From: Convolutriloba macropyga
Lineage: Eukaryota
Assembly: GCF_964194025.1 (NCBI RefSeq)
Contig: NC_134474.1
Location: forward strand, 34,410,001-34,474,000
Reading direction: 5' to 3'
DNA: 64,000 bases
Shown here one piece after another: positions 473 to 57,323 of the stretch. The notes beneath the pieces were generated by a model. It ran no database searches, was not told where the DNA came from, and saw nothing but the letters and a program-made list of their open reading frames with translations. The position numbers were made by a program, and so were the translations under genes. Each line of letters starts with the position of its first letter. Within the stretch, counting starts at the first letter, position 1.

Positions 473-806
473 ATGCCTCCAAAGAAGAGTGGTGGTGCAG
501 CTAAAACGAAAGTTGCATCAGGTCGCAAACAAGCCCCTATTACCAATGTCAGTACAGCGGCAGACACGTCGAGTGAATATAGCGATGATGATGGCGACTA
601 TACAGTGATTCAACGGCCGGATTCATTTTTTCCTACTCTTCCGAGGTCACAGGGGTTAGGTGATTTGTTGAGAGAAGCCATGATGCCTGTTAACACTGAA
701 GAAGACCAACAACCTGGAACATCAAGTAACCGGGGCCAAAGAGTAGTAGCTGCGTCATCGGGAACTCAAACTCAAACATCAGGCCTTGGAAGACAGAAAT
801 CTTCAG
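473..806 (+). CDS. First coding exon of a low-complexity K/S/G/T/Q-rich protein (MPPKKSGGAAKTKVASGRKQAP...QKSS); candidate N-terminal tail exon of the H3 variant at 10379
   Basis: ATG at 473 follows a polypyrimidine acceptor (tttttctttcag, AG 457-458). A consensus donor CAG|GTCAGT lies at 806/807 in phase 1. The ORF-track extension to 844 runs into intron. Confidence 0.6.
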
Positions 807-3354
807 GTCAGTATAAACCTATTCGTCCCGCAGTTGTCTTTTGATGATCCAGTTTTGATTTGTGGTATATTTAAAGAGGAATTCCGATCAAATGTACAAC
901 GCTCTTTTTTATTTCAGACCAGACGACAATCGCATACATGTTCTTTCACTGTGGATGGTCATTAAATATTGCTATCTTCTTTTTTATTCCCGTAATAATA
1001 TACCCACAGGTATCCATTTTCACTAAAACGAATGATAAGTATTAAGAAAAAATTATACAAACAATTGAGGGTCGCTGCCCATTCTGCAATAACAAGACGG
1101 TTTGTGCGAGTCTGTCCGTGGAGCAGAATGTTCCAACATAGCTCTCAAGGTTGTAAAAACAACTTTTAAATTCTGTCAGAGGAATTGTTTTGAGTATCGC
1201 TTGTTTTGTACCCTTGTTTGTTCCCTTCTTTTGTACCCTAGAAATTGTTTTGTACCCTGCTTTTTGAATTATCTGGATGATCTTCTTAGCAGTTATACAA
1301 CTATAAAACGATCGAACAGGAATAATTTACCATGGTTCTATTCGTCCCACACTATTCATGCTTTGAATAAATGCAACAACGTTGTTTGAAATCTTTCTAA
1401 ATTTCCTTCTGCGTTTGTTCAAGAACTTGGCAGAGATGTAGACGTGTCTGTAGCGTCAAGTTGTTTTCGGCTTATTAAGAGACTCAAGAGTGACCTCTTA
1501 CCTACTGAAATGTGATCAGAAAGTACAATGCATCATGGGTACCCGTCCATTGCGAATGCTTTCAATGCAGATTTTATGACGGTCTATCAGCCTGCCGTTG
1601 GTTTTTTCGACGTCTTTTTACAACAGACATTAAATGAGCTATGCTTTACGATGGTCGATATTCAAGCCGGCTTATCTCAAGCTTCCCTCGGTAGAGGTTT
1701 TGACAAAATACCAGGTGACTTTCCTCGGATGGCTACAGATAGTTTAACTTATTATGTCATGAAACTAATTCAAAGTATTTCTGAAACTTCGACATACCCA
1801 AAAATATGGAAAGCAATTATTATACCAACTTTTAAAGTGGGCTCCAAATTCTGTATTCATTTTTACCGTTCAATTAGTAACTTAAGTAAATTGTCCTTAG
1901 TGTTTGAAAGAGTTCTTTTTAATACTCTATATCCTTTCGTTAGAAAGTTAATCTCTCCTCGTCGTTTCGGATTTATGAAAGGACGCTCAACAATAACTCA
2001 ACTTATATTGTATCTTGATGAAATTTACAAAGCTCATGATAAAGCTGATGATGTATTTTGCATATATCTAGACTTCAGGCCAGTATAAACCTATTCGTCC
2101 CGCAGTTGTCATTGATGATCCAGTTTTGATTTGTGTTATTTTTAAAGAGGAATTCCGATCACATGTACAAAGCACTTTTTTATTTCAGACCGGACGACAA
2201 TCGCATACATGTTCTTTCACTGTGAATGGTCATAAAATGTTGCTATTTTCTTTTTATTCCCGTAATATTATACCCACAGGCATCCATTTTTCACTAAGAC
2301 GAATGATAAATATTTAAAAAAAATTATACAAACAATTGAGGGTCGCTGCCCAGTTTGCAATTACAAGACGGTTTGTGCGAGTCTGTGCGTGGAGCAGAAT
2401 GTTCCAACATAGCTCTCAAGGTTGTAAAAACAACTTTTAATTTCTGTCAGTGGAATTGTTTTTTACCCTTCTTGAATTATCTGGATGATCTTCTTAGCAG
2501 TTATACAACTATCAAACGATCGAAAAGGAATAATTTACCATGCTTCTATTCGTCCCACACTATTCATACTTTGAATAAATGTAACAACGTTGTTTGAAAT
2601 CTTTCTAAATTTCCTTCTGCGTTGGTGGAAGAAGTCAGCAGAGATGTAGACGTGTCTATAGAAATTGACACTGCATTTTGTCTTCATCTTGATCAGTTTG
2701 CCTCAAATAATACTGACGCGTCAAGTTGTTTTCGTCTTATTAAAAGACTCACGAGTGAGCTCTTACCTACTGAAATTAGATCAGAAAGTACAATGCATCA
2801 TGGGTACCCGTCCATTGTGAATGCTTTCATTGCAGATTTTATGACAGTCTATCAGCCTGCCGTTGGTTTTTTAGACGAATTTTTACAAGGGACATTAAAT
2901 GAGCTATGCTTTACGATGTTCGATGTTCAAGCCGCCTTATATCAAGCTTCCCTCGGTGAAGGTTTTGACAAATTACCAGGTGACTTTCCTCGGGTGGCTA
3001 CAGATAGTTTAACTTATTATGTTATGAAACTAATATGAAACTAATTCAAACTATTGCTGAAACTTCGACATACCCAAAAATATGGAAAGCAATTATTATA
3101 CCAACTTTTAAAACGGGCTCAAAATTCTGTATTCAGTCTTACCGTTCAATTAGTAACTTAAGTAAATTGTCCTTAGTGTTTGAAAGAGTTCTTTTTAATA
3201 CTCTATATCCTTTCGTTAGAAAGTTAATCTCTCCTCGTCGTTTCGGATTTATGAAAGGACGCTCAACAATAACTCAAATTATATTGAATCTTGATGAAAT
3301 TTACAAAGCTCATGATAAAGATGATGATGTATTTTGCATACATGTAGATTTCAG
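801..3354 (+). repeat. Tandem duplication, first unit 1272 bp (801-2072; second copy from 2073), covering the intron start plus part of the LINE
   Basis: cttcagg(t/c)cagtataaacctattcgtcccgcagttgtc starts at both 801 and 2073. ORFs 1102/2355 and 1528/2622+3035 are near-identical translations. Confidence 0.92.
1090..2072 (+). mobile_element. Truncated copy of CR1/L2-like LINE ORF2 (linker plus N-terminal RT); start approximate
   Basis: WKAIIIPTFK, YRSISNLSKLSLVFERV, FGFMKGRSTITQL and IYLDF are non-LTR RT motifs. The copy ends at the duplication junction. Confidence 0.85.
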
Positions 3355-4390
3355 CAAAGCGTTCGATTGTGTCCAACACTCATACTTTTGAACAAATTGG
3401 AAAGCTTTGTAGTTGGTTGAAATTTATTACGGTTGTTAGCTTCTTATTTAACGAACAGAGAACAGTGTGTCAAAGCTGAAAATTGTTTAACCTCATGAGC
3501 CTCCATTTCAAGCGGAGTTCCACTGGGTTTGATTTTGGGAATATTGCTTTTTCTAGTATTCATTAATGACCTACCGTCCGGTGGTGTGCCAAGTTTGTAT
3601 CTCTTTGCTGACGACGGCAAAGCATTGAATAATGATTTGCATACTTTACAAAACAACGTGCAGTCATATTTGAATTGGGCCACGAAAAATTCAATGCTGT
3701 TTAATGTTTCCAAAACTCCATTTTTGTGGTTGGAAAGACTAAGGGATACTGCTCTTTAAATATTGGGGGTGAAGTAGTTCATCCCGTGAAAACAGTCAAA
3801 GATTTAGGTATTTATCTTTCGGGAAACTTTAAATGGAACGTCCATATATTGAGAAAGACTTGGCTTATGTTTCTCTTCTGACATCGCTCAAAAGAAATCT
3901 ACATCTTGACTTACCTCTTCAAACGAAGTTAACAGTGTACAGATCATTCCTTTAGTCAACTCTCCTTTACGGATCTGAGATATGGTCTCTCTCCTGTGCT
4001 GAACTATTGAAATTAGATGGTTTTCAAACTAAAAGTACTAAGAGGATTTGCTCATCAAGCTCGTATCGAGACAGACTTTTTAAATGTAAATTACTACCGA
4101 TTTGCTGCTTGCTGCAGTTCAGAGATTTTACAATGCTGAACCGAATCTTGACGCGAAAATATGATTTATGTGCTATGCAACTCACCCAAATTCAATACAA
4201 TCAACTCTTGCGAAGCTCGTCCAAACCACTTTTGATTTTGAATAAACAAAGAAATCCATATCTGAAAAGAAATTTCTGTTTAGAGCTGGGAGACTGGGAA
4301 ATTTAGTTCAAACGTCTACGAGTCTCAATATTTTTATGGATTCCTGTCTTTTTAAAAGTTAACTTAAAACTCTTTAACTTGCTTTCGTTA
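2350..4390 (+). mobile_element. 5'-truncated, degraded CR1/L2-group non-LTR retrotransposon ORF2 (reverse transcriptase pseudogene); boundaries approximate
   Basis: Motifs FGFMKGRST, DFSKAFDCV, SGVPLGLILGILLFLVFINDLP (consensus SGVPQGSILGPLLF..INDL), LFADD, VKDLGI and LLYGSEIW. Stops and frameshifts are present, including an 11-bp microduplication atgaaactaat x2 at about 3024-3045. Confidence 0.9.
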
Positions 4391-5008
4391 ATGAAAAATT
4401 TGATAATACTCATTTTTTGTGTGCATTCTGATTTCCTTTGATCTGTAATGCCTCATGAAGCCATTAAGTCTTTTACTGCTACTACTAGTACTATCCAAAA
4501 ATAACATATGCAATGGAGACAAATACTGTTTGAACCAAAAAATCCGACAAAAACGAAATTCTTCAATAACTTCTAGTTCTTCAACAAATTCCCGTTCTTC
4601 AGCCAAATCTAGAAACATTTTTTAATTTTGTTTTTGGTCAATACTTAAGTTTCGTCACTGTTCGATTAGGTCTTCTTTTCTTATAAAAAAACTAGGCGTG
4701 GAATTTTTAAGGCAATTGTGTTGATAAATGTAAATTTGGAATTAAACTTGAAAATGTAACCTGAAAACGAGAATTTTCAATTTTGATACTTGATGAGCAT
4801 AATGGGACCATAAATTTTTTTAAAAAAAAATCTGGCAGATGTGAACTATTTTAGACTATTTTTATCTTTCATTCCGTCGCTACTATATGTGCATGATTGA
4901 GTTATCAGTAGTAATAGCGTATTTTGCGGCTTTTACTAGCAATGAATATCCATGAGCTTTAATATTGTCCAAACTCAAAGTGTTTATAAATATCTCCTTT
5001 TGTCAAAT

Positions 5009-5359
5009 AATGGAAATTAAAATTATCGTAGCTTGGTTCAGAGCATATTTTGCAGAGCATATTTTATTCTTTTAATGTTAAGCTGTCCTCACTTGGCCAA
5101 AGATAGCTATTGTAGAAGCGAACTGCTCGCCAGACGTTTCCGAGCGTTAGTTGGTTTTGTTCTTAGGCATCTGTCGTTTAAGGGACCCTTTGAATTTTGA
5201 GTTAAGTGACGGCTTAGCAATAATTTTTTTCAGAGTTGGACTTGAACAATGCCTTCCAAGAAGAAGAGTGGTGGTGCAGCTAAAGAAAAAGTTGCATCAG
5301 GTCGCAAGCAAGCCCCTATTACCTTTCAGCAAACAAACCCCTATTACGGATTTTCATAG
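5009..5359 (+). pseudogene. Partial duplicate of region ~209-544 (upstream sequence, acceptor and start of the MPPKK exon), reading MPSKKKSGGAAKEKVASGRKQAPIT then diverging to a stop at 5359
   Basis: Long near-identity, e.g. gctgtcctcacttggccaaagatagctattgt and gttggttttgttcttaggcatctgtcgtttaagggaccctttgaattttgag. ATG at 5249; homology stops at gcccctattacc (~5323). Confidence 0.8.
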
Positions 5360-5954
5360 TAAGCTTTCAGCTTACTATGAAAATCCGGGTATCTTGGGTG
5401 TCCGTTCTATTGACTCAGCGTCATTTTTTTGACGGATGTTTTCACGTCTTTTTTGTCATGTTTGAAGTTAGGGGAGCCATTCTCAATTGTCATTGAATTA
5501 GGTATCATTGATTTTTTAGTGAAGCTTTTGGTTTTAAGTAGCACAAGCTTATCGTCTCTTTCAATGACTCAGCATTAGCTTGCTGAGTAAGTCATCTGTC
5601 TTTTTGAAAATATAATATATTGTTTCATATATGACCATATCAAGATTTGAGTTTGAACCCAAGCAATTCAACTCTGTCGAAAAAATGCTATTATACAGCT
5701 AATTGACTATATTGAATCAGCTCAGCAAAATTGAAATGCGAAACGTTGTACCATTTATCTTGATCACGGAAAAAACTATAGTTTTCAAGGCTTTGCCTAG
5801 TGAACTGAATCTGTGCAATAGGACAACGGCTTCACTTCTAGTGGAGCTATCTTTTTGGCAGTTAGTAAGTTGCAAAATTAAAAAGCTTATCATAGTCTAT
5901 GGAAACCGTACTCAACGGTGTAGCCTCGGGTTGCGTACTCAAACCTCCTTTTAA

Positions 5955-8900
5955 TTTTTAATAGCCGACTCAGCTTAGCTGGCTATTATAGCGCTCCTAA
6001 TTTTTTTTCAATTCAAAGAATTTGAATTGTATTGGTGCGCTGTCTTTTTTTTAAAGATCTTCACGCTTTTTTCGGCTTTTTCACGGCAGTGAGAAGTTAA
6101 ATTAGAGTTGTGATTTTGGTCACACTGAAATAGGAAAGGGAGCGAAGAATCGAGTAGGTTTGGTGCGTGACTTTTTTCAAAACAGCTTTAAAGTGGAGTG
6201 AGAAATTGGTGTTTGAACAATTTGGCGGTTATTGAGATGGATTTTTTTTCAGGTGCGTCAATTTGACTTCTGTTTTCAGAGTTTCCTCTCCTTTAGTGCT
6301 TTTAAGACGGTACATATGTGTTCTAATTGTGCCTATTTGCCTTTGCTTGAATTCATTAAGGGGAAGCTAAAAATTTTTATGACTTTGGCACTATTTGTTA
6401 TAAAATATTAGTGAATTTCAGATTTTCCCCCTTTTTTTAAAATTATCTGTTGTCTTATCACTTAGTGTCATCAATGATAAGTCTGATTGGGTGCTAATGA
6501 GGAGTAAAAGAACCTAATTAATGGTCGAGTCAATAGCTAGTGGTTTTCATGACTTTTACATTACTTTTTCTCAAAAATTTTGAGTGAATTTTTGATTAAG
6601 AATTTATTGTACTTTTTGATGTCTTATCATTTACTCTCCTTGGAGACAAGTCGCTGATGCTGCTAATAGGAGTGAAATTTGTCAATTTAATTGTTTTTGT
6701 TCAAGGCTAGTGCTTTCTATGACTTGACGCTAATTGTTTTTAATAATAATTATAAATTTTTTTGAGTTTTTCTTTTCAACTGTGTCGTCTTAGCTCTTAG
6801 TCTCGTTATTGACAGGTCTCATTGGTTGCTAAAAAGGCTTTAATTAAAGCAAGTCATTTCAGTTAGTAGCTATTGCTTTTTGTGACTTGTTCGTTCATAA
6901 AAAAATCATGTTATTTTTTTTGTTTTGCTAATGTTTGTTGTAGTTATTGCTGTCTGATCACTTAATTTCATTGATAACATGTCTCAACAGTGGTCATTGA
7001 GGAATCAAATAATTGATGTAATTGTATCCTTCAGTAGCTGTTGTGACTTTTATAGTGTGTTTGTAGTGTTTTCAAAAAATTACAGCGAGTTTTATTGCAA
7101 TTTTTAGTTGTTTTTATCTTATTATTTTATATTATTAGTGAGAGGACTCATCGACATTTAATGACAGGTTGCTAATGAAAAATAGAGAATTTTAGTCGGC
7201 ACTTTGAGTTCTCCGCAGTTGTTTTTTGATGCTGATCCTGTCTTCTCGAAAAATAAGTTGAATTTTTAGTCTTGCTTGTTTTTGGTGTTCTTGTGTTGTT
7301 TTTTGCTTAGTCTCATTACTAACAGCTCTCTTTTGCCTTTTAAAGCGGAGTGAGTGATTTTCAGATCATAAATTAATAAATTTCTTTGAATTTTTTTCAG
7401 GACTTGTCCTGCTTTTTTTTGAAGATGTGTTCACACATTTTTCAACGACTTTGATCCTTGAAAACGGGATGGACAGGTGAAGCCCTGTGGGCTTTTAGGT
7501 TTATTAAAGGCCCAAATTGGGCTATAGTAGTCCTTCAAGTTCTTACAGTGGTGCAGCTGCTGGGATGGCCTTAATTTAATGTTAAAAAGTCATTTTTTGG
7601 AGTTTTTGGGCTCATTTTTTTTATCTTTTGAGTTTTTTGTTTGATTAGTCTTGTTTGAAGTTTTTAATAGTCGATGAAGACCTTTTGCGAGACAACATAA
7701 CTTGTCATGACGATTTTATGATCTTTGTTGTGGTGCTACAAACACTCAAAATTTTTGTCATTTTTTGTGTTTTTCCAGCTTGAGGGGCCGGGGAATCTTT
7801 CAAGTTTGATAATAGGGCACTGCATAGAGTACTGGTTTTTAGCATTTTATTGTTTCGAATTTTAGTATTTTTTGGATAAAATCTGCCTTTTTTTAAGGTT
7901 TTCTAAAGTTTTTGTGAATTTTGGTATTTTTCCATTCTCAAGTGGCAGAAAACCTATTCCACGGTGTGATAGAAGTTACTGCATTGTTGTTAGTTTCAAT
8001 GGGTTTTTTTAACAATTTAACTTTTCGACTTTTGGGTTACTGGATAGCGTCTAGACAGAAATGATTCTGAAGATAATAATATCACAATTTTCAGCAACAG
8101 TTCATTAAAATTTGCAATTGATTTCATTTTTAATTTTCCGGTCATTTTCGAGTTAATCGATCTTTAAGGGCCGGTGAATTTTTTCAGGTCTTGCAGTTTT
8201 AATACTGGACCGATTTCAGAAACAAAAATTGAATTTGAACATATTTTTGAAATAGGTATATTTTAAGGGATCAAATTTTGCCTTCGGGGTAATAGCTTCA
8301 AGAGTTTTAGCAATGAGTATATTACTGTTTGATTGTTTCAGTTTCTTCTCAAAATTTCAATAATCTCAAAGTTTTTTTTTGAGATGATTTTGTTTGTTTT
8401 GGCTGGCCTTGTTCAATTTATTTGCTAATCAGATAGAGTACTTCTGAGTTTTTCATTCAATTTTTCGAATCGTATTTTAGGACTTGTAATGCTGTTTTTT
8501 TTTACTTCGTCGAATTAAAATTGTTCGCTTTACCTCATTTTGCCGCCTTGAGATTTTGCGTGAAATCTTTTTGACTTCTCTTGGCTAGTTTCACTCTTCT
8601 CTCATTCTGCTAAAAGTTATTTTAGACAGCAGTTGCTCAGCAAAGCAATTCAAAATGAGCAGAGTCAGTATCAAAAAAACGAAATCAGAAATAGAAACGG
8701 GATAAAGCCCGATCTTAGATGCCCGTAACTTTGTTCTTAGTTACCACTCCTAATGTTTATTGGTATTGATACTAGCCCCTGTGTGGTCTCACCACGGAAC
8801 AGGAGCATGTTCAGCTCCAAAATGACATCTCTATAGTTCGCACTTTAAAATTGTTTATACAAAATCATTTTTTCACTAATTTTTTCTTCTTTCAATCACA

Positions 8901-8957
8901 ATCTTGGTTATGGGAATCAACGGCGGCTATTTTCCGGCAATCTGCCGGGTATGTTTT
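5955..8957 (+). mobile_element. Non-autonomous Helentron-type element (HINE/DINE-1-like), family A, copy 1
   Basis: 5' subterminal aatagccg (5960) with a nearby inverted partner ggctatt (5981). 3' subTIR ggcggctatt (8922-8931) is followed by hairpin ccggca-atc-tgccgg (8934-8948) and T-rich sequence. Both ends are homologous to 16828-17773. Confidence 0.75.
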
Positions 8958-9558
8958 GAAATTGATCTTCCCAGGATCTTTCTTGATGTTTGCCGAATAC
9001 TTCAAATTCCTTTTTTTAGTTGAATTCCCTGATTAACAGAAGGATTGTGCGCCTTGTCTTATATTTCGCTTTTTCTTAAAAATTGTACGTCAAAGATGAT
9101 CTACATCTTGAATCGTTAAACTACTGAATGACTTGGGAGCCATATTCGGCCCCGAATTAACTAAAGCTGATTGGTCATATTGCTGAAAAGTTTACCGAAG
9201 AATGTAGATGCTTAGGTAAGCTTAACATCAGAATTAGTTGGAACTCAATTCTTGCAAACTTGACATGTATAGATTTTTGTTATTTACCAGTTTCACAGAA
9301 AATTAAACTGAAAATTTGAACTTCTGATTTAATTTGGATTTCTCTAGCTGTCTGGAAAGTTGCTGAAAATAGGCTTTTAGTTAATTTAACGTAAGGCCTG
9401 GTGTTACTATATCTAAAGACACCGTTTTAAAACAGCAGAGTCCTGTCTTATTTTCTTTGAATTTCCTTTTCAAAAAGTTAAGGTTGTTTCTGAGCGAAGT
9501 TTGAAGCAATTATAAACGTGTTGGTCTTCTTTTATCCGAAATTTTTGCCTGACTTTTC

Positions 9559-9724
9559 GGATCTATTCTGCCCCCCCCCCAGTGCTTTTATAACCCCCAG
9601 TTACAAATTATATGTGATTATATAGCACGTTACTATGTAAGAAAATAGCACGTGTGCCTGGGGGTCATAAAAAATTTATGCTCACTAAGCTGGGGGGGGG
9701 GGGGGGGCGAAACAGAATAGATCC
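9559..9724. mobile_element. MITE, Merlin-like
   Basis: TIR ggatctattctg...cagaatagatcc with a perfect 8-bp TSD gacttttc (9551-9558 and 9725-9732). GG...CC termini with an 8-bp TSD fit Merlin. Confidence 0.85.
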
Positions 9725-10188
9725 GACTTTTCTAGTGACTTTTACGTCCTCGACTTTTTCGTTTTGCGTAATCTAAATTTCTCTCTCATTGACAAGTGTC
9801 AGCAGATGAACTCAGGTGGCGGCAGTTCACTATCAAAAGTAAAATGAAAATAGAAATGAAATTGGTGTAATTTTTTACCTTAATTTTTTTAGTGGTTATA
9901 GTGTTATACAATAACCTCTAATGACGTCATTTGAAGCCCCTTGGTGAGTTTAGTTACTGCCCCCCCAGCGACTGAAGCTGGCTGCAATAGCTTTGAGCTC
10001 CCACTAGTCATTCGAGAGCATTTCTACGTAGTTGGTCGTTTGTTTATATTTTGACAATTTAATCACCTCAGTCATTCTCCTTGTCCGGATTTTGACAGCG
10101 ATCAAAGAATTTTATTGCTCGGCGACTTAATTGGAGTCCTAGATGCTAGCGGGTTTTTTTGGCCGAAGATGTTCTGAAGATTTTTAGC

Positions 10189-10204
10189 ATGACTTACCCG
10201 AAAG
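10189..10204 (+). CDS. Alternative short first coding exon for the H3 variant (MTYPK-G)
   Basis: ATG act tac ccg aaa g|gtaaca is a phase-1 donor compatible with the acceptor at 10378 (174-bp intron). It could be chance. Confidence 0.35.
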
Positions 10205-10378
10205 GTAACATGTGAGGTTAACATTTTGGCTAAACTCAAAATTGGTTCCTGTCAACGGCCGGTCTGCACACCCCATTACCGCTGTTATCATTAATTTACC
10301 GGCAACGTTATCGTTTGATAAGACATGTTTTGTTATGACTGACTGAGCTGATTCTTGATTAGATTTTCTTTTTTTAAG

Positions 10379-11031
10379 GTGACTCAAACAGTAGTCAATC
10401 CGAAGCAAACGTCGGTTCGAAATCAAAAGTGGCACAGCCTAAGAATAAAGAATTACCAAAGAAAGGAGCATCGCAAAAGAAAGGAGCATCAGATGTTCCA
10501 AATGTTGCTCCCGCTTCGCAGTCGACTAGTGACAAACAGTTGTCATCTCGTCCACAACATTTTGTGACAACGCTGTCTCCAATTTTGCCGGTTTCATCAA
10601 CAGTTTCTGGGGCGCATGTATCAAGAAGAGGATCTGGACGCGCTCGAGGAAGCTCCAAACCTTCTGTGAAAGCTACCAAATCTGCCTCGAGACCAACTCA
10701 TAGACGAAAAAATCGATATCTTAAAGAGATTCAAGAACTGCAAAGAACAACAAATCTCTTAATTCCCAAATTGGCCTTTCAACGCCTGGCTCGTGAAATT
10801 ACTGAGCAGATGTCGGATCGATTAGAGCCGTATCGTTTCACAGGAAAGGCAATGTTGGTTTTGCAAGAGGCGGTTGAATATCAAGTGTGCGAGTATTTCC
10901 AGGCTCTCATGTTTTTAGTGTACCACTGCGGAAGAAAGACCATTTTATCCAGAGATTTTGTCTCACTTGCTTGTGTATTAGATACACTTGGCATTAATCT
11001 ACCAATGTACAGGAGCAACAATCACATTTAG
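10379..11031 (+). CDS. Terminal exon of a divergent histone H3 variant (CenH3/CENP-A-like): basic Ser-rich tail plus complete H3 fold
   Basis: YLKEIQELQRTTNLLIPKLAFQRLAREI...RFTGKAMLVLQEAVE...HCGRKTILSRDF aligns to H3 [28 protein letters not shown]...RFQSSAVMALQEASE...HAKRVTIMPKDI, with loop 1 three residues longer. The ORF-track start is GTG. An in-frame TAA at 10375 and acceptor ttttctttttttaag (AG 10377-10378) show it is a phase-1 spliced exon. Confidence 0.85.
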
Positions 11032-11105
11032 CAACAATCGCGGTACTATACAGACCTACCGCAATAGTAGATACAATATTTTGCAGGAACTGTGTTGATA
11101 AACTA

Positions 11106-11111
11106 AATAAA
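11106..11111 (+). terminator. Candidate AATAAA polyadenylation signal of the H3 variant
   Basis: AATAAA lies 75 nt after the stop. No canonical histone 3' stem-loop was seen. Confidence 0.35.
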
Positions 11112-12481
11112 CTTGTTTTTCCATAATTAGAGCAACAATGTTCAATATTGAAAATTTCGCTGACAACGCTGGTGTAACGGCGACCAGCATTGTCCAGATT
11201 ACTATTGCTACCACTCATCCATTTATTTCACAATTGGAATATCTAAAACTGCTCAAACGGACAACTGCTTTCCTTTCCACCAAGTGGAACAAATCGTGAT
11301 GCAGCTTTTTAAGACATGCAAGATCTTGATTCTCTTGATCAAACTTGAAAGACTTTAACAAGAGCATTTCAGTTCAACATATTATGATGAATCTTGATAT
11401 ACCTTCGTTTGGTCTTGTTCGTAAAATAATTTTTTATTCAAGAACATGCAAATATCTTGCAAGTTTGTACATATGTTGACGTTTGCTCACCAAGAAAGTT
11501 ATCAAGATATCATCTAGATATTTCAAGTTGCATTTCATTGGCCACTATTAGCTTCGAGTTATGAGATCTTTGTTAAAGTTAATCTGTTTCCTCTAACAAC
11601 TGCCCGCTATTTGAATTGTAGGAGCGATTTCAAACTTTAATCATAGCAAACCACTGCGGTTGCAAAAATACCCTATAGTTTGTTAATCTAACGTTGTTAA
11701 AATAAATATCGTCCGCGGCAGTGAAGCAATCAGTTCCTAGAAATCAGATCGATTTGATTTGTTAGGTTATGTAAACGTTTTAGAAAATTGTTTACTGATT
11801 ATCACAAAAATTAATTCTACCCAAATTATGAGGAGCCAATCTTCATGATAATTGATTCGAATTTGTTTGATTAGTGAATTTCTGATTTGTAACATTTGAG
11901 TGGTGCCTTGAATATTAGCCAAATGGAAATCAGCCGAATAAAATGTCAATTCTATAGAATATCAACAAATGTCTCTAAAAAGCTTTTTTCAGACAAATAT
12001 CAGAAATGCTATCTAAATTTTTTAAGCAAAAAGTTGCACTCTAAGTTTTGACAAAAAAAATCCAAAAAGTTGGATTTTTCAAGTTGACGCAAAGCATTTT
12101 GTTCGTTTTATGTTTAAGATTAATTAAGATAACCACGGCCAATATTCCGGAAACCCATTTGAGTATTGTTGTTTGAGTTACTTAAAAATATTTTTGATGT
12201 GTTGTCATTATTTTGTTCACATTTTACGCGAGAATTTAAATTCTGCTATTTTGTTTCCTCATATTAATTCAATCATAGATCTATGCAAGTTAAACAGAAC
12301 CTAGGTCGTCTCAGAAGGCGATTTTACGAATAGAATTGAAGCAATCAAATAATGAAAATGGTTGTCTCGCACTAAGTATTCAAAATAATAAAAGTGAACT
12401 GAACCCCGCTTTGGAGAGGCAGAAGACCAGTCCGGTGCCTCAGAATTTTTACAAATGGTGCGTCGGTGGTCGCAGATCAAG

Positions 12482-12485
12482 GTGT

Positions 12486-12521
<36 letters not shown>

Positions 12522-12966
12522 GTGTGTCTGTGTTTTTGGAGTNNNNNNNNNNNNNNNNNNNNNNNNNNNNNNNNNNNNNNNNNNNNNNNNNNNNNNNNNN
12601 NNNNNNNNNNNNNNNNNNNNNNNNNNNNNNNNNNNNNNNNNNNNNNNNNNNNNNNNNNNNNNNNNNNNNNNNNNNNNCACGCGCGCGTATGTGTGTGTGT
12701 GTGTGTGGGGGGGGGGGTGGTATGTCTGTGCGGGCACGCGCGTGTGTTTGCGTGCGTGTGTGTGGTGGCGGGTGTTGGGTAGGGGTGTGGTGTGTATGTG
12801 AGCACGAGCGCGTTTGGGTGTGTGAGCCTATCTGTGTGTGTGTCTGTGTTCGTGTGTTTGTGCGCTTTCATGTGTGTTTCTGTGTGTATGCTTGTTTGTG
12901 TGTGGTGTGTGTATGTGTGTGGTGTGATTGTCTGTGTGTTGCGTGTGTGTGTGGTATGTGTGTGTT

Positions 12967-13007
<41 letters not shown>

Positions 13008-14723
13008 CGCGCGTGGGTGAGTGTGTAAGGGTGTGTGTTAGTGTATGGGTGTGGTTAAGTGTGTGTGTGTATGTGTGTGGATTGGCTTGGGTGGTGTGTG
13101 TTTATGTTTTGTGTGTATGCGTTGTGGTCTTTGTTTTTATGTGGTGTGTTTTCGTGTTTGTGGTGTGGTGTGTTGTGTTTGTGTGTGGGTGTGTGTGTAG
13201 GGGGGGGGGGGGGTCGTGTATGTGCGTGCGTGGTGTGTTTGCGCGTGGTCACGCGAGCGCGCGCGCGTGTGTGTGTGTGTGGGAGCGTGCGCGTGTGTGT
13301 GAGCGTCTCTGTGTGTGTGTGTGTGTGTGCGGGCACGCGCGTGTGTTTGCGTGCGTGTGTGGTTGAGGGGGGTTTGGGTTTTGGATAGGGGTGTGGTGTG
13401 TGTATATGTGAGCACGAGCGAGTTTGGGTGTGCCTGTATCTGCGTGTGTGTGTGTGTCAGTGTGTGTGTGTGAGCGTGCGCTGGCATGTTTTTCTGTGTG
13501 TGTTTTATGTGTTTGTGTGTGTGTGTTTTTGTGCGTGGTGTGGTGTGTGTTTGTATGTGTGTGTGTGTGTGTCTGTGTGTGGGGGGGGGGGGGGGGTTGG
13601 CGCGTGCGTGTGCGCGCGCGTGTGTATGTGGATGCGTGTGTGTTGGAGAGCGTGTGTGTTTGGTCTGTGGGTGTGGGGGGGGGGGGGGTGGGTTGGTGTG
13701 GTGTGATGTGTGCGGGAACGCGCGTGTGTTTGCGTGCGTGTGGTGGGGCTTTGGTTAGGGGTGTGCTTGTGTTTATGTGAGCACGAGCGCGTTTGGGTTT
13801 GTGCGCGTGTTTGTGTGCGTGTGCCTGTAAGTGTGTTCGTCTGTGTGTGCGTGCGTGTGTTTAGGTGTGGTTGTGTGTGTCTGCGTGTGTGTGCTATGTG
13901 TTTGGTGTATGTTTGTATTGTGTTTTGTGTGTGTGTTTGCGTGTGTGGTCGCTTGCGTGGGTGTGGTTAGCTGTGTGTGTGGTCTGTATGTTGTTTGTGT
14001 GTTTGTGTCTGTGGGTGTGGTGTGTGTATGGTTTGTTTGTGTTTTTGCGTGTGTATGGTTTTGTGTATGTGTTTGCAAGTCGGTGGTGTTTGTTTGTGTG
14101 TGTTTTTGTTTGTGTGTGTGCGCGCGTCTGTGGTGTGTCTGGTTGTGTATGGGGTATGTGTGTGTGAGGGTGTGCGTGGGTGAGTGTGTAAGGGTGTGTG
14201 TAGGCGTGTGTGTTTGTGTTTGTGTGTAGTTGGGTGTGAGAGGTTAAGTGTGTGTTTGTGTGTGTGTGTGTCGATGGACTTGTGTGTGGTGTGGTGTGTT
14301 TGTGGTGGCTGTGTATGTGTTGTTTTGTTTTCGCGTACGTTTGTTTATGCGTTTATTGCGTTTGCGAGTTTGTGGTGTGGTTTGTTTGCGTGTTACGCGC
14401 GCGCGTGTGTGGGAGCGGGTGCGTGTGTGTGAGCGTCTTATGTGTGTGTGTGCGGGCACGCGCGTGTGTTTGCGTGCGTGTGTGGTGGGGGGGGGGGGTT
14501 TGAGTTTTGGATAGGGGTGTGGTGCGTGTGTTTGTGAGCACGAGCGCGTTTGGGTGTGTGCGCGTGTTTGTGTGCGTGTGTGCCTGTATGTGTGTCTGTG
14601 TGTGTGTGTGCGTGCGTGTTTAAGTGTGGTTGTGTGTGTCTGCGTGTGTGTGCTATGTGTTTGGTATGTTTGTGTTGTGTTTTGTGTGTGTTTCCGTTTG
14701 GTCGCGTGCGTGGGTGGTTAGCT

Positions 14724-14764
<41 letters not shown>

Positions 14765-15167
14765 GTGTGTGTATGTGCGGTGTGTGTGTTTGCGTCTGTG
14801 GGTGTGGTGTGTGTATGGTATGTTTGTTTTTGTGTGTGTGTGTGATTTTGTGTATGTGTTTGCAAGTCGGTGGTGTTTGTTTGCGTGTATTTTTGTTTGT
14901 GTGTGTGTGTGCGTCTGTGGCGTGTCTGGTTGTGTATGGTGTATGTGTGTGTGGGTGAGGGTGTGTGCGTGGGTATGTAAGGGTGTGTATAGGTGTGTGT
15001 GTGTGTGTGTGTGTTTGTGTCTGAGAGGTTAAGTGTGTGTTTGTGTGTGTGTCGATGGATTTGTGTGCGGTGTGGTGTGTTTATGTGGTAGGTGTGTATG
15101 TGTTGTAGTGTTTTTTCATGTACCTTTGTTTTTGTGTGTGTTGTGTTTGCGTGTTTGGTGTGGTGTG

Positions 15168-15205
<38 letters not shown>

Positions 15206-15495
15206 CGTGAGAGTTGTGTTTTTGTGTGTCTGTTGTGTGGGAGGGTGTGTGTTTGTGTGGTAGGGTGTGTGTGGACGTGTTTGTATGGTGTGTGTGTGTG
15301 TGCGTGCGGTTTGGTGTGGGTGTTTGTGTGGTGATTGGGTTTGTGTTTGTGTGTGGCGTGGGTGTGGGTGGGTGGGTACGTGGGTGGGTGTGTGTATGGT
15401 GTGGTGTTTGTGTGGTGTGTGTATGTATGTTTGTGTGTGTGCGTGAGTGTATATATGTTTGTATGCATGCTTGTATGTCTTTGTGTCGGTGTGTA
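12482..15495. repeat. ~3-kb degenerate (TG)n/(CA)n compound microsatellite with recurring GC-rich motifs
   Basis: Almost pure T/G on the + strand. Motif gcgggcacgcgcgtgtgtttgcgtgcgtgtg recurs near 12730, 13329, 13713 and 14452. Confidence 0.95.
12543..12677. other. Assembly gap (135 N)
   Basis: Run of n characters. Confidence 1.
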
Positions 15496-16827
15496 TTGTT
15501 TTTTATCTGAACTATTGCCAATGTTATTGCAACCTTCAAGAATATGATGACTCAAAAAACCACCAAAATTGCAACATCAAATTTGACTTTTTTGTCCTGT
15601 AACTTGAAACATAAGAGTGTAAAAAAGAATAAAGGTGTAACTTCTATGATTTACATGCAACACCCGTTAGTGCTATTATACAACCCTGAACTCGGTTTAG
15701 GCAATGAAATATTTGTAGAAGCATGATGCAACGAATAAAATTTTTGCATAACCTTTTGAAACCAAGCTGCGTTTGCGAAATTTTGGAACTTAACAGCGTT
15801 GATCAATGGAACCACGTCGCAACTAAGGATAATCCAGCTCACGGAATCAGCTTTTTTAAAACAATTTTTACATATTGTGAGGATGTCGTACATAATTTTT
15901 TGCTTTGAACGAACTGAGAATACTCACAGTAGGCTTCACCCAGGGAAAAGAGTGCAATAAAGGGTGGACAAAAGAGTGTAATTTTAGTGTATTTGTAAAA
16001 GTGTATTAAGAGTGGGCTAAAGTGTAAAGAGTGTACACAAAAGTGTAATTTTCATAAAATTACACTACTCTTTTCTTTGCTAATTAAGAGTGGAATTGGC
16101 TTTACACCCTTATTCTCGCTTAATAACGGTGGAATACGGATGGACGCCTCGGCTCGAGAAATATTTTTTTTCAATTGAATCTTTTTGGCATAATTAAAGC
16201 CCAAACAAATGATCATTTTGCAATTGCTTTAGAAGAAAGATTGATTATAACTATCAAAAAAGCGTATTTTTTAAGAAAGGATGGAAAAGTTCAAACGCCT
16301 TTCAACGTATGTAAAGCTTACCGGCAATGGCAAATATATAAACAAGGAGTAAAAAAATCTGCCCTTCGAACCACACTTTGGCAGAAAACGGAATATTTCG
16401 CTAAGCAAAATTAGTACTGAGCATAATGCATTTGTCTGATCAATTGTTAAAGAACTTCTGTTTCGATGATGAGTATCTCTCCGACGATGCATGAAGGACA
16501 GCCGAACGTAGCAAAGAAGGAATTTTGCGCCCCATGAATAAAGGTTTTCGCAAGGGGGAGGGAAAACGCCTTTCATTCCTCCAAAATTTTGAAACGTGAT
16601 CCTGCGGGGCAACCGATTAATCAATATAGAGTTGGCAGGTACAAAATAGCGGGACAAAATATCTTGGAAAAGCATGCTTGGCCTAAATTTGGTGCTATTT
16701 CACGGGTCTACATTCTTAAATATATAGCTTACGATGCCGATTGTTAAGAAGCGCGGGAAAGCAAGTTAAGGACCTCAATTCCAACATTGCAAAATTTGGT
16801 TCGAAAGATAACCGTAAGATCTCTATT

Positions 16828-51967: not shown

Positions 51968-52231
51968 GTGAAGGATGAAATTGATGGTGGTGTGACCAAT
52001 TTAGTTTTTGACAAAAGTAATAAAGAGAGACCACCATGGCGTTGCTGTTCTAATACTGTAGTTCCGCGATCGGAGGTAATATTTTTCATCCAAGTCGGCA
52101 TTATTGTGCTGATGAGAAGCCTCTGCTTTGCTATGCTCTTTTTGATATCAGAGAGTTGTGAAGAAAAGTCAATTTGGATTGCATTGCTTTCAAGTCTAGT
52201 TGGTTACATTCTGCCAAATACTAAATTATGA
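51968..52231 (+). CDS. Small two-transmembrane Polinton protein
   Basis: W.CC....PRSEVIFFIQV[hydrophobic]...WIALLSSLVGYILP has two hydrophobic segments. Its stop overlaps the ATPase start (ATGA). The annotated start is GTG and is uncertain. Confidence 0.65.
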   Translation: MKDEIDGGVTNLVFDKSNKERPPWRCCSNTVVPRSEVIFFIQVGIIVLMRSLCFAMLFLISESCEEKSIWIALLSSLVGYILPNTKL

Positions 52232-52916
52232 ATAAAGTTGTTCTCACGCACGACAGAGTCTTTATGGTCTTTGTGGGACCCAGTGGATGCGGAAAAACTA
52301 ATCACATGTTCAACGTGTTACGAGGGGCAACATTCTATCCGCGTTTTCCAAAAGTATACTAATTTTATAAAGACTACCAAGAATTATTCACGGATGTACA
52401 ACGTCAACTCCCGAATATCGAGTCCATTAAATTTCATGGATTTGAGATTACGAAGAAATTATCAAACTGTCTATTGATATATGACGATTCATGCGAAGAA
52501 ATATTCAACGATAACGAATCTGTCAAAATTGCAACATCTGGCCGACATCCAAAACTGCACGTCATTTATGTTAAACACAATTTGTTTCAACAGAGCAAGT
52601 GATCCCGCACAATTGATTTAAACACAACTCACATTATTTTTCTTTAATTCGCTACGTGACATTCAGCAGATAGAATATCTTGGAAAACAGTGGAAATGTC
52701 TTCAACTGCTTACAGAAGCATATAAACTAGCAACAACCGAGTCATACGGACATTTGTTTATTGATTTATTGTTGATTTATTATTGACTTACGCTTCTCAT
52801 CGAACCTCATTGGACCCGAACCGTGGGTTTTCTATTTTACTTCGAAGGAAGCAGTCATAACACCAATAGCCAATGAAAAAGAAAAGCTTGCATATGCTGA
52901 AGCTTTGGTGCGTTAG
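52228..52916 (+). pseudogene. FtsK/A32-like genome packaging ATPase
   Basis: Translated by hand from ATG 52228: MNKVVLTHDRVFMVFVGPSGCGKT (Walker A), CLLIYDDSCEE (Walker B), ATSGRHPKLHVIYVKHNLFQQSK*SRTIDLNTTHII. Stops at 52360 and ~52600 plus frameshifts. Missed by the ORF track. Confidence 0.9.
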
Positions 52917-53148
52917 CAACAACTCGAAATCAAAAACTAAGAATAATATTCTCAAGAGCAATTTGGATTTCAGTTGGTTTCTCATCGACTGTGTTAGGAA
53001 CGTGCTTTCCGGCGTGGTGCCTATAAACAAGACAAAAATTCAAAAATTCGAGACTGAGCTACGACAGTCATCTAATAAAAATTCAACGCACAGTCGAGAA
53101 GTAAGCTTTTCCGGACAGCAAGAGGTCATCTATCTGATTCAACTTTAA
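52894..53148 (+). CDS. Small basic Polinton hypothetical protein (possibly frameshifted at the 3' end)
   Basis: FLIDCVRNVLSGVVP...KFETELR resembles a short conserved ORF I recall from Polinton gene blocks; it overlaps the ATPase end. Confidence 0.5.
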   Translation: MLKLWCVSNNSKSKTKNNILKSNLDFSWFLIDCVRNVLSGVVPINKTKIQKFETELRQSSNKNSTHSREVSFSGQQEVIYLIQL

Positions 53149-53179
53149 GCTAAACCTTGTCTGCAATATTTCCAAAAAG

Positions 53180-53689
53180 ATGTCAACTGAAGAATTCGTG
53201 TTGATTCCGCGCCCGATGTTCATAGAAGAGCAACGGGAGGTCGCACAAATTTTGCAGAACCCAGAAATACAGAATCCGGGTAAACAATTGTCACTCCTGC
53301 AAAGAAACTCAAAACCACAAACACCACCAGCTTCAATAGAATTCAGTTTGGAACAACAAACTGATAACGTTACAACTGCTGATGAAGAAAACCAATCGAT
53401 GATTGACAATATCAACAGTAAAGTTCTATATGATATCGATTTTCTACAAGGCGAGAAGTTCCAGAAAGAAAAGAAAATTTTAGAAACAATTAACGACTCT
53501 GAAATAATTTCTGTTGACAATGAAGGCAACCTAATATTCTCCAACGAAAACACTGAAGTTTCAGCATCAACATTTCTGTACGCATTACAGCAGACATCCT
53601 CAAAACTAACAGATGTACATTATCATATACTCCATCATCTAAACATTCCCACACAATTTACCTGCAACACCTACGCAAAAAACTCCTGA
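53180..53689 (+). CDS. Polinton hypothetical protein (169 aa, probably truncated)
   Basis: ATG-initiated open frame between recognised viral genes; no motif recognised. Confidence 0.55.
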   Translation: MSTEEFVLIPRPMFIEEQREVAQILQNPEIQNPGKQLSLLQRNSKPQTPPASIEFSLEQQTDNVTTADEENQSMIDNINSKVLYDIDFLQGEKFQKEKKILETINDSEIISVDNEGNLIFSNENTEVSASTFLYALQQTSSKLTDVHYHILHHLNIPTQFTCNTYAKNS

Positions 53690-53725
53690 AATTACCCGAA
53701 GAGCAACAGAAACAGAAGCTGGAAA

Positions 53726-54765
53726 ATGGTTACTCGACTGACAAAAAACGGAACATTGCTGTCAAGAGAGCAGAAGAAACATAGACTCCTGGCGTTGACG
53801 AGGAAGGCTTTGCAAACGCGGACGAAGAACTCAAGCCACCTTCAAACTCGAAAAGTTTTTTCGGAAGAAATTAAAAATCTAAATAAAATCTACACAACAA
53901 GCAAAGCATCATTTGGAAGCGTTGTCAATCTGCAAAAAGAGAGCGGTTTACCACAGAAGAAAGTTGAAAAGTTTCTGCAAACGAAAAACTCTAACACCAA
54001 ATATCGACAATTCAGAAAAATTTTTCCACGACTTAAAGTTATTGCTCACAGAATAAATAAAATATTGTCTGTTGACGTTGCTTATATTGACAAGTTAGCC
54101 AAACACAACAATGAAGTTAAATGTTTGCTGGTTACTGTGGCTGTTTTATCGCGTTATTTACGTGTCCAACCAATGAAGGCTTTATATTCAAAGGATGCTG
54201 TTGAAGCATTCAAAAAAATGATCAAGAATAAAATAAAAAACCAGAGATGGTATGGACAGACAAAGGCTCCGAATTCGAAGGAGAAATCAAAAGATTTTTT
54301 GAAAAAATGGAAATCATTTATGTACAACAGAAAACGAAACCAAGTCGGCATTTGCTGAGAGCAACATTCGACCGCTCAAAACATTATTTACCGATTCTTG
54401 GAGGAATAGTGGTCCTGTTCATACATTACAGATCTTTCTAATTTTGTAAATATTATTAACAGTCGTGTAAACCGTGTTACTAAATTAGCACCTAACAGAG
54501 TATTCAAAAAGCACGAACCGTCTTTGATTTTACCGGCACTCGACAACAATAAATACACGCCACGTTTCAAAGCAGGTGATTTCATTTGAATAGCCAAACC
54601 AAATGAAACATTTCGGAAAGGTTACACACAAAATTACACCAACGGAGTTTTCACTATAACAAAAATTGCCACGCTCAGTCCACCCACGTACCAACTGGTG
54701 GATGCGAACAAGGAAAAAATCCTGGGAAAATTCTACGAGCCTGAACTTGTCAACTTACATCCAGC
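53726..54765 (+). pseudogene. Polinton retroviral-like (rve) integrase
   Basis: SFGSVVNLQK...VEKFLQ, ILSVDVAYIDKLAKHN...LLVTVAVLSRY...QPMK, WTDKGSEF, AESNIRPLK, FRKGYTQNYT, TYQLVDAN.EKILGKFYEPEL; several frameshifts. True start uncertain. Confidence 0.92.
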
Positions 54766-55561
54766 GATGAATTTACATAAGGCTTATTATCAAACGCCTC
54801 AATGGATATTTTTTCGAGAAAACACAATGGCGTCATTTCGAAATCAGTTATCTCAGCCGATACAACTACAAGGACAGTGGAAAGTCGGTTTAACGTCTAT
54901 ATCATTCCCGTCAAATATCAACAATGTTAACTCAACCGAAATCATGGTTTACGACAACTCCGGATCTCAAATATATGCTTCACACCACCGAATGGGGCAA
55001 CTCAGGAAAATTCGAAAAAGTATCTATAAAAGCTGGGAACATCTTGTTCAGGAAACTATCCGTGTAGCCCATTTGACACAGTTTGATTACAAATTTGATT
55101 TCGTTACAGGAAAGCTCATTTTTACATTTGGTAAAAACGAGGGACTCTCATTTCAAGGAGACGAAATTCCCAGCATTCTTGTCTTCAAAGCGAAACCTGA
55201 TCCTACAAACGAAGGTTTTTTTCATATTGGCTATAAATCAGAAAAACTTAATAACAGAGATACTGGCGTTTTTCCTGTTGACATAACCTGCGGGTCACAA
55301 TTATTTTAATCTATATTGATCTCATTGAATATCAGCATGTAGGTGACTCACGTGCACCAGTACTCAAGAACATTGAGTCAGAAAGACGAGTGCGAAACGG
55401 CAGCCCGGACACTGTTACTCCAGTTTATCATAAATCTGACACAAATTTAGATTTTAAAAAATTGCTATCAAACGATATTCTGAACTGAGACTGGGGAACT
55501 CATTCCCCTTAATGGGACTAGCAAGGTTGTCGTTAGTCTCAAGTTCCAGAAAATCAACTAG
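54760..55561 (+). pseudogene. Minor capsid protein (penton, single jelly-roll)
   Basis: DEFT*GLLSNASMDIF/ENTMASFRNQLSQPIQLQGQWKVGLTSISFP...IYIDLIEYQHVGDSRAPVLKNI...ETGELIP..VVSLKFQK, typical of Polinton minor capsid N- and C-termini. Confidence 0.85.
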
Positions 55562-55564
55562 ATA

Positions 55565-55924
55565 ATGGAGGCGTACTGCAATAGCCGAGCATCCAATTCG
55601 ATGCCCCACTTCTCAGGACATTACAGACAAAGAAGAAGCGGTTTTGGAGCATTGGCTGCTGGCATCGGACGCGTGGCCTTACCTTTGTCAAGAAGAATTA
55701 TTTGGCCTGCAGCAAAGCGAATTCGTGGAGAGCTTCTTGTGCAAGGACCGCCAGAGATAGCTGAATTTGCAACAAAGAAGACAGCAAAGCAGGCATTAAA
55801 AATTGAAGTAGCAAAAAGAGTAAAAAAAACAATTAGGAGGATCATTTCACATCGTTCGACGCGTCATCAGACGAAAGAAGTCCCGGGGAAGCAAAGCTTA
55901 CAAAAACAAACCTTCTCTAATTAA
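55565..55924 (+). CDS. Small basic virion core or membrane-active precursor protein
   Basis: HYRQRRSGFGALAAGIGRVALPL resembles the RQRG.G|hG protease-cleavage motif followed by an amphipathic helix, then a K/R-rich tail. It lies between the minor and major capsid genes. Confidence 0.65.
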   Translation: MEAYCNSRASNSMPHFSGHYRQRRSGFGALAAGIGRVALPLSRRIIWPAAKRIRGELLVQGPPEIAEFATKKTAKQALKIEVAKRVKKTIRRIISHRSTRHQTKEVPGKQSLQKQTFSN

Positions 55925-56019
55925 ACGCGCATTTTCATCAAAAACCAAGCTGCATCAGATCGATCAGCTTCCTTTGAGAAGTTGATCAGATTTCTTCTCA
56001 AAAGTCAAAACTGCGCGCT

Positions 56020-57323
56020 AACATTGTTATCCCATCTGAGGCAACGCATAGTACATTGGACTTGTTCGAGAAACCCCCTCTGCTCTTTACGATTGACTAA
56101 GCTTTCGAGCAGAAAACTGGCCCCCTTTATTCTCCTACAGGATCTACACTGGAATTTGAAATTGTTGGAGACCGAAACAATTTCATCGACTTACAGCAAA
56201 TTCATCTTGAGGTAAAGTGCCGTATTGTGAAAAGCAATGGAAACAATTTAAGTTATAATACTGGATATGCCAATGTAAGCGACACACGTTTCTTCGTAAA
56301 TAATATCTTGCACTCTTTATTCTCTGATTGTACAATGTCAGCTAACGGTAGCAAAATTTCATCAGCTAATGGACACTACGAGCGCAAATGTTTCATTGAA
56401 ACTGAAATTTCTCATGGCTCAGACGCAAAAAGTACATAGCTGAAATGTCAAGGATACGAATACGAATCCGATCTCAACACAATTCCAAACGCTACTATTG
56501 CCCAACTGGACTTACTTGTTCGAAGATCCATCCAACTTACACTATACGGTAAAGTTGCTGTAGACTTTTTCTCATGTGAGAAGCAATTAATAAGTGGTGT
56601 CACAATGCGACTCTCTTTCCGAAAATCACAAGATGACTTTGTTATAATGAGTGAAGACGGTGCAAAGCATTTTAAAGTAAAAATCGATGTGTGAAAAAAG
56701 CTAATTTGTTCGTTCGCAAAATGACAGTATCGGATAATGTGGTGGGAGCAATTGAAAAAACTCTTCTGAAAACCCCAGCCATGTATCGATAAAACGAAGT
56801 TATTTCAAAAGCCTTTCTAGCACCAGCTGGACAACAAATCTGGAAACAAGAAGATGTTTTCACAAAGGAACCTATTCGAAGACTTATTTTTGCAATGTCT
56901 TCAAGTGCCGCTTTCATTGGAACCAACACTGAAAATCCATTTTTATATCGAAAATTTGGTCTAAGTGAGATAACTGTTTTTCGCAATGGATTTGCAAATG
57001 CTGGTACGCCAATGTCGACCAGAGACGATATAAGGCTGTACTTCAATTCAATGGGAGCCTTGGCCTTCAATGAAAATGGACACGGTATATCATTGGCTGA
57101 TTTCCCACGCCATTATATAATGGTGTGTTATCTTACGAGTACACAAGAAGCCACATATGATTCCATTTACACCGAATCAACAAACTCATCATTATCAGTC
57201 GAACTGAAGTTCGTTGCAGCATTAGCAAACAACATTGAAAAATTATCCTTGGGAGAAAAATGTTCAACAGTATACATCGATTCTACGAGAAACGTTTCCA
57301 AAAACTCTCTTCCTTTGAGCTAA
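56020..57323 (+). pseudogene. Major capsid protein (double jelly-roll); start approximate
   Basis: STLDLFEKPP...LEFEIVGDRNNFIDLQQIHLEVKCRIV...VNNILHSLFSDC...FIETEISHGSDAKST*LKCQGY...DFFSCEKQLISGV...ANLFVRKMTVS...IRRLIFAM...AFIGTNTENPF...LSVELKF; stops and a frameshift. Confidence 0.9.

Follow-up and report, generated by a model that had tools for sequence, protein, structure and literature searches.

A divergent histone H3 relative with hallmarks of cenH3, encoded by an intact single-copy gene of the acoel Convolutriloba macropyga

Since cenH3 has been lost in holocentric insects, chaetognaths and rotifers (PMC12460157), it is a fair question whether the early-branching and fast-evolving acoels have retained it. 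Our literature search found no description of an acoel or Xenacoelomorpha cenH3. The question is raised by a locus of Convolutriloba macropyga located in a stretch of 64,000 nucleotides (contig NC_134474.1; hereafter ‘the window’, with positions counted from its first nucleotide), for which a preliminary description had offered two readings, that is, the CENP-A of this lineage or a new H3 variant peculiar to it. The locus is an intact, single-copy, two-exon gene encoding a divergent relative of histone H3 with hallmarks of cenH3/CENP-A, and the evidence favours the first of the two readings: CENP-A is the best match among solved structures in both sequence and fold, and loop 1, the N-terminal tail, the C-terminus, the divergence and the gene layout point in the same direction.

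The architecture of the gene is best described starting from its 3' part. Exon 2 contains an open reading frame of 200 codons on the forward strand (10429–11031), which is part of a run of 217 codons devoid of stops (chance probability ∼1e-7 at the local base composition). The frame ends with a TAG at 11029–11031, and direct reading of the sequence locates an AATAAA polyadenylation signal at 11106–11111 on the same strand, 75 nt 3' of the stop. Upstream, the frame is shut by a TAA at 10375–10377 and open from 10378, and exon 2 contains no in-frame ATG ahead of the fold; an upstream exon and an acceptor at 10377–10378, where an AG follows a poly-pyrimidine tract, are thus required. The preliminary description had placed the histone fold at 10696–11031, where it is indeed found, but this span holds the fold only: upstream of it, coding sequence reaches as far as 10379, with a first exon most likely located at 473–806. 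The first part of exon 2 (10379–10695, forward strand) encodes the remaining N-terminal tail, in which Ser, Lys and Arg abound and an LSPILPV motif occurs. The motif is collinear in the nearest relative, P0155 (399 residues; cluster mate of P0027; encoded by the poly(A)+ transcript contig L004), with which exon 2 as a whole aligns at an E-value of 4e-25.

The probable exon 1 (473–806, forward strand) has its ATG at 473 and comprises 111 codons plus one base, up to a donor CAG/GTCAGT at 806/807 which is of phase 1 and agrees with the acceptor side at 10379. Its product would form the beginning of an extended N-terminal tail that opens with MPPKK and continues with a Ser-rich stretch and an acidic patch, SDDDGDYTVI. 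This MPPKK is unique across the six frames of the 64-kb window; P0155 likewise starts with MPPKK, and its DPNDYTIV at residue 46 is collinear with DDGDYTVI at residue 39 of the window protein. The alignment between exon 1 and P0155 is weak (local similarity with E-values of 0.31 to 0.67; tblastn 0.67), and the exon 1 call is thus based on the statistic for the MPPKK start, for which the chance expectation upstream on the forward strand is 3.3e-4 and which was reached in two out of 3000 shuffles. No BLASTP match was obtained between exon 1 and the Symsagittifera protein introduced below. The assignment of exon 1, for which a five-residue match at the start and a weak collinear motif speak, is probable, and joining of 473–806 and 10379–11031 across a probable intron of 9572 nt (807–10378, forward strand) would yield a coding sequence of 987 nt. 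The gene model would thereby be corrected to a protein of 328 residues with a probable first intron of 9.6 kb. Two other candidates were discarded: a mini first exon at 10189–10204 (MTYPK; donor AAAG/GTAACA, likewise phase 1) is devoid of support and lies directly after a very high-copy repeat, and an alternative donor at 824/825 exhibits poor consensus.

Judged from its signals, the layout is that of a replication-independent histone gene, in line with what the preliminary description had proposed: the acceptor at 10377–10378 implies an intron, the AATAAA is present, and the histone 3' stem-loop (Rfam) was not found at the gathering threshold or, in 10900–11700, at E-values up to 10. Since transcript contig L004 exhibits an in-frame stop ahead of the ATG and a poly(A) run at its end, the closest relative is represented by a full-length polyadenylated mRNA. 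The window gene is predicted to be expressed.

The fold itself is of the H3 type. Pfam assigns residues 76–178 of the 200-codon reading frame to the core histone family (PF00125 Histone, E-value 1.1e-17), and AlphaFold2 and Foldseek likewise support an H3-type histone fold at 10696–10986. The AlphaFold2 model, calculated for the last 125 residues from a 115-row alignment, has a mean pLDDT of 86 and comprises, all on the forward strand, helix N (10705–10746), helix 1 (10768–10812), loop 1 (10813–10842; 10 residues in the model), helix 2 (10843–10926), loop 2 (10927–10947) and helix 3 (10948–10986; 13 residues), the latter being hydrophobic and devoid of the RRIR basic face. A C-terminal tail of 14 residues follows (LGINLPMYRSNNHI; 10987–11031 with the stop codon), the first half of which is hydrophobic; in the model the tail (10987–11028) is non-helical, with pLDDT values down to 55.

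Canonical H3 is marked by an ARTKQTARKS tail with K4, K9, K27 and K36, by eight residues from REI to RF, and by a C-terminal LARRIRGERA. The window protein is neither a canonical nor a replacement H3 (H3.1, H3.2, H3.3): the H3 tail is absent, loop 1 is three residues longer, helix 3 and the C-terminus are replaced, and sequence identity to the canonical reference (P0004:1-136) is 36%. As the preliminary description had noted, there is no ARTKQTARKS tail; neither exon 2 nor the probable exon 1 contains a motif of this type, and the N-terminal tail of ∼220 residues harbours none of the K4/K9/K27/K36 sites. The additional length of loop 1, which had also been noticed, is evident both from a 3-residue gap in the BLASTP alignment with canonical H3 and from a column count in a MAFFT alignment of 142 rows (one canonical H3, the others being divergent H3-like folds), in which the segment bearing loop 1 has 13 residues in the window protein vs 10 in H3. 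In 108 of these rows the length of loop 1 exceeds that in H3, and for Dictyostelium cenH3 (H3v1) it has been pointed out that an extended loop 1 is not an obligatory criterion (PMC2995078).

In the 142-row alignment the window protein retains Q68, R69, R83, F84, H113, R116 and D123, while T107 is replaced by L, K115 by G, R128 by A and R129 by C, and I130 persists as V. Like CENP-A, the protein also has L at C110. Helix N reads YLKEIQELQ, with K for R49, L for Y54, and no RPGT motif. The motif LLIPKL is present, and most of 115 divergent H3-like folds likewise carry P at this position. The residues singled out in the preliminary description, including the replaced T107 and the helix 3 that lost its basic face, were hence read correctly, but the ‘mosaic’ of cenH3-like and canonical features which it saw in them is not unusual. 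In the literature of Malik and Henikoff, replacement of Q68, F84 and T107 reportedly serves as a criterion for cenH3; the window protein has L for T107 and retains the other two. With Q68 kept in 46% and F84 in 50% of the aligned rows (T107 in 20%), that is, in about half of the divergent H3-like folds, their retention says little and hardly argues against cenH3. Similarly, 16 residues do follow VSLACVL, but the ‘16-residue extension’ corresponds to a C-terminus reaching 12 residues beyond that of H3 in the ungapped alignment and to the 14-residue tail of the model. The hydrophobic character of helix 3 and tail also stands, but it is not peculiar to the window protein: it is common to its relatives, resembles Drosophila Cid3 and tick proteins, whose helix 3/C-tail pattern is similar, and fits the rule that CENP-A C-termini, though little conserved, are universally hydrophobic, unlike those of H3, because CENP-C docks there (PMC5509776).

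One may ask at this point whether the locus is a decaying or unexpressed pseudogene of an H3-like gene, as a 9.6-kb first intron full of retrotransposon debris and the indirect link to exon 1 could suggest. We consider this highly improbable, because (i) both exons are open (chance ∼1e-7 and 3e-4), (ii) the splice sites are canonical, their phases agree and a polyadenylation signal is present, (iii) the structural residues of the fold are retained and the fold is predicted with a pLDDT of 86, and (iv) dN to the relatives (0.58–0.70) is far below the saturated dS. Including all comparisons among the relatives, dN ranges from 0.57 to 0.70; with dS saturated against every relative, no dN/dS ratio can be given. 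Judged from these sequences, divergence between the window protein and the few relatives it has was fast.

These relatives emerged from an exhaustive HMMER search of 1.84 billion representatives, which returned 4340 matches; none of the representatives exceeds 50% identity to the window protein, and several of the top scores belong to mispredicted tandem H3 genes. The kin found are three: (i) P0155 with its cluster mate P0027, (ii) P0013/P0151 (locus L003) from Symsagittifera roscoffensis (XP_063711384), and (iii) P0002, a metagenome protein from a metagenome scaffold. The NCBI name of the Symsagittifera protein is ‘histone H3.v1-like’, a label derived from Dictyostelium cenH3 (H3v1). Those neighbours among the matches that bear a name are cenH3 proteins, which speaks for the cenH3 reading; they include Cid3, the ‘centromeric protein CSE4’ of a midge and bat CENP-A. 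In the IQ-TREE phylogeny of 142 folds, a single clade (SH-aLRT 95) unites the window protein with the three relatives, outside which the tree is unresolved, and within the clade the window protein groups with a plankton transcript and not with Symsagittifera. Identity of the folds inside the clade is 40–48% (41–48% between the window protein and its relatives, with 41% for Symsagittifera).

All members of the clade share the hydrophobic helix 3, and helix 2 ends in FQ[AT]L or FEMC. The likeness of P0013, P0155 and P0002 to the window protein further comprises T107 as L or C, the FQ[AT]L ending, a hydrophobic C-tail with the (W/L)-P-hydrophobic motif, which three of the four sequences display, and an N-tail that is long, basic and Ser-rich and begins with M-[PG]-P-K-K. 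Where the window protein has its C-terminal tail, the relatives read G/A-x-x-W-P-hydrophobic; the N-tails of the relatives span 70–280 residues and are hardly alignable. The excess of loop 1 over that of H3 is 0, +2, +3 and +7 residues across the clade. P0013 differs in being encoded by a single exon, whereas the window gene has an intron, and in its H3-length loop 1 and the loss of H113; in P0155, loop 1 exceeds that of H3 by 7 residues, and both H113 and R116, which the window protein keeps, are lost. H113 is lost in two of the three relatives (P0155 and P0013; N or G in its place) and R116 is A in P0155; in the alignment, H113 and R116 are retained in 135 and 136 of the 142 sequences, respectively.

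Attempts to enlarge the clade left it at four sequences. Exon 2 and P0155, each used as query in a word-index search of proteins, returned no matches, owing to the length window and to the small number of shared 5-mers. A word search based on a profile of the four sequences gave 157 matches, of which nine high-ranking ones (ranks 3–6, 11, 13, 17, 30 and 46) were examined; none of the nine displays the hydrophobic helix 3 signature, so that the clade was not extended, and two are tandem-H3 mispredictions. A feature search returned histone clusters and nothing else.

How does the protein compare with CENP-A on the one hand and H3 on the other? A phmmer search of all PDB chains ranks human CENP-A first (58 bits, E-value 9e-15), canonical H3 scoring 47–50 bits and yeast Cse4 48 bits; BLASTP yields 65.1 bits and 38% identity for bat CENP-A (P0124, our CENP-A reference) vs 55.8 bits for H3; and Foldseek lists CENP-A chains at the top of its PDB matches (39–44% identity, probability 1.00), with H3 chains next (33–36%). 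A profile built from the four-member clade, in turn, scores CENP-A at 90.9 bits vs 88–89.7 bits for H3. As this gap amounts to ∼2 bits, the classification does not rest on similarity scores. A PDB search with a mixed alignment (A1) was uninformative because A1 included H3-like rows.

That the clade profile hardly favours CENP-A over H3 is what one might expect for an H3 variant that is non-centromeric and specific to the lineage, such as a histone of germline or sperm chromatin, in which cenH3-like features arose convergently through fast evolution. The canonical Q68 and F84 of the window protein could be read in the same way, and the losses of H113 and R116 in relatives, odd for a nucleosomal H3, suggest relaxed or altered nucleosome constraints. 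Moreover, the monophyly of cenH3s is uncertain, and published trees do not cleanly separate them from other divergent H3s (PMC3380720). On the other hand, the cenH3 pattern consists in just this combination of a longer loop 1, an N-tail that is long and unrelated to that of H3, and a hydrophobic C-terminus, and the window protein, taken alone, scores CENP-A 8–10 bits above H3. Known non-centromeric H3 variants also usually retain a recognisable H3 tail. On balance, we regard a non-centromeric variant as unlikely, albeit worth keeping in mind.

The comparison with vertebrate CENP-A, i.e., the human (e.g., 3nqu_A) and bat (P0124) proteins that represent the best sequence and fold match, is instructive in detail. 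Both have the longer loop 1 and a helix N that reads [W/Y]LKEI..LQ and lacks RPGT (WLKEIRKLQ in CENP-A), and they further share the replacement of T107, L for C110, HxGR in place of HAKR, the absence of the H3 tail, and a hydrophobic C-terminus. Identity is nonetheless just 38–44%, and vertebrate CENP-A has S or C at Q68 and W at F84, whereas the window protein retains Q68 and F84; CENP-A keeps the basic LARRIRG face of helix 3, which the window protein lacks; its C-tail is LEEGLG, as opposed to the 14 residues (LGINLPMY...) of the window protein; and its N-tail comprises ∼40 residues, compared with ∼220. Cid3 of Drosophila rufa (P0047) likewise exhibits a loop 1 extended by three residues, a hydrophobic helix 3 (MVLMAYLID) without the RRIR face and a long N-tail unrelated to H3, but it has S at Q68 and I at F84 and bears no specific relationship to the window protein in the tree.

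The mention of Cid3 raises the possibility that the window gene is one of several acoel cenH3 paralogues (compare Cid1–5 of Drosophila), perhaps specialised for a tissue or stage, and not the sole centromeric histone. The fold identity of just 41% to the Symsagittifera protein, the placement with the plankton transcript in the tree and the widely varying loop 1 lengths of the clade would be in accord with such a scenario, yet acoels evolve fast in general, and a single Symsagittifera representative (P0013) occurs among the named top matches of the exhaustive search. Nor was a second copy seen, either by searching the 64-kb window or by contig depth, which equals that of the unique flanks: in all four runs that contain this stretch, which are DNA contig sets from a single study, one contig spans 9996–12300 with 0 differences and at the word depth of unique flanks, from which it follows that the gene is single copy and the assembly is correct. 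We thus consider membership in a set of paralogues to be quite improbable.

The defining criterion for a cenH3 is its localisation at centromeres and its need for kinetochore assembly. An H3 fold that retains residues of nucleosomal contact, a longer loop 1, a helix N and a helix 2 terminus reminiscent of CENP-A, an N-tail that is long and not related to that of H3, a hydrophobic C-terminus, fast divergence and a replication-independent layout are, in combination, best explained by a cenH3, and we propose that the window gene is probably the cenH3 of this acoel lineage (CENP-A/Cse4/CID class). By analogy with characterised cenH3s, the histone fold would pair with H4 and take the place of H3 in centromeric nucleosomes, in keeping with the conservation of residues predicted to contact DNA or to form the four-helix bundle (K64, R69, R83, R116, T118, H113 and D123). 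The long loop 1 and the diverged helix 2, which correspond to the CATD region, may enable a dedicated chaperone to distinguish the protein from H3, the CENP-A-like helix N would probably grip the DNA ends more loosely, and the hydrophobic C-terminal tail probably serves as a docking site for a CENP-C-type motif.

It is also tempting to speculate that the acoel proteins represent a cenH3 subtype of their own, with hydrophobic residues in place of R128, R129 and R131, an added G-x-x-(W/L)-P-hydrophobic tail and, in some members, no H113 or R116, or else that the family is non-centromeric and acoel centromeres are built otherwise; we assign this pair of possibilities a small probability. Were a distinct acoel subtype to exist, one would have to consider an altered H3–H3' interface or a mode of kinetochore docking unlike the CENP-A LEEGLG / CENP-C paradigm.

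Along with its Symsagittifera and plankton relatives, the window gene constitutes a concrete cenH3 candidate for acoels, which can be used for mapping acoel centromeres in new chromosome-scale assemblies. Beyond this candidacy, it is an expected housekeeping gene of an ordinary kind.

Some observations on the surroundings of the gene may be added. Matches to the reverse transcriptase family RVT_1 are located inside the probable intron at 3035–3388 (E-value 5.1e-9) and, more weakly, at 1528–2085 and 3529–3756. In the region 1528–3759, pieces of a non-LTR reverse transcriptase, some of them duplicated, are arranged in tandem and in the orientation of the gene; the ORF pieces 1102–1389 and 2355–2597 are near-identical and suggest two nested or tandem copies. 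The reverse-transcriptase reading frames of the intron are decayed. Elsewhere in the window, the ORFs at 53180–55309 (within 51968–57778) gave no Pfam match at an E-value of 1e-3. Downstream of the gene, 12336–15555 is a long TG/CA-rich, microsatellite-like tract around a masked run of N, with spurious long Cys/Val or Thr/His reading frames on both strands. Just 5' of exon 2, finally, lies a repeat (9555–10109) that is rich in runs of C and G and exhibits many joints and loose ends; its word depth in Logan contigs is 4e5 to 6e5, compared with 28–38 in the gene and ∼30 in the flanks, and it probably represents a short interspersed element of very high abundance.
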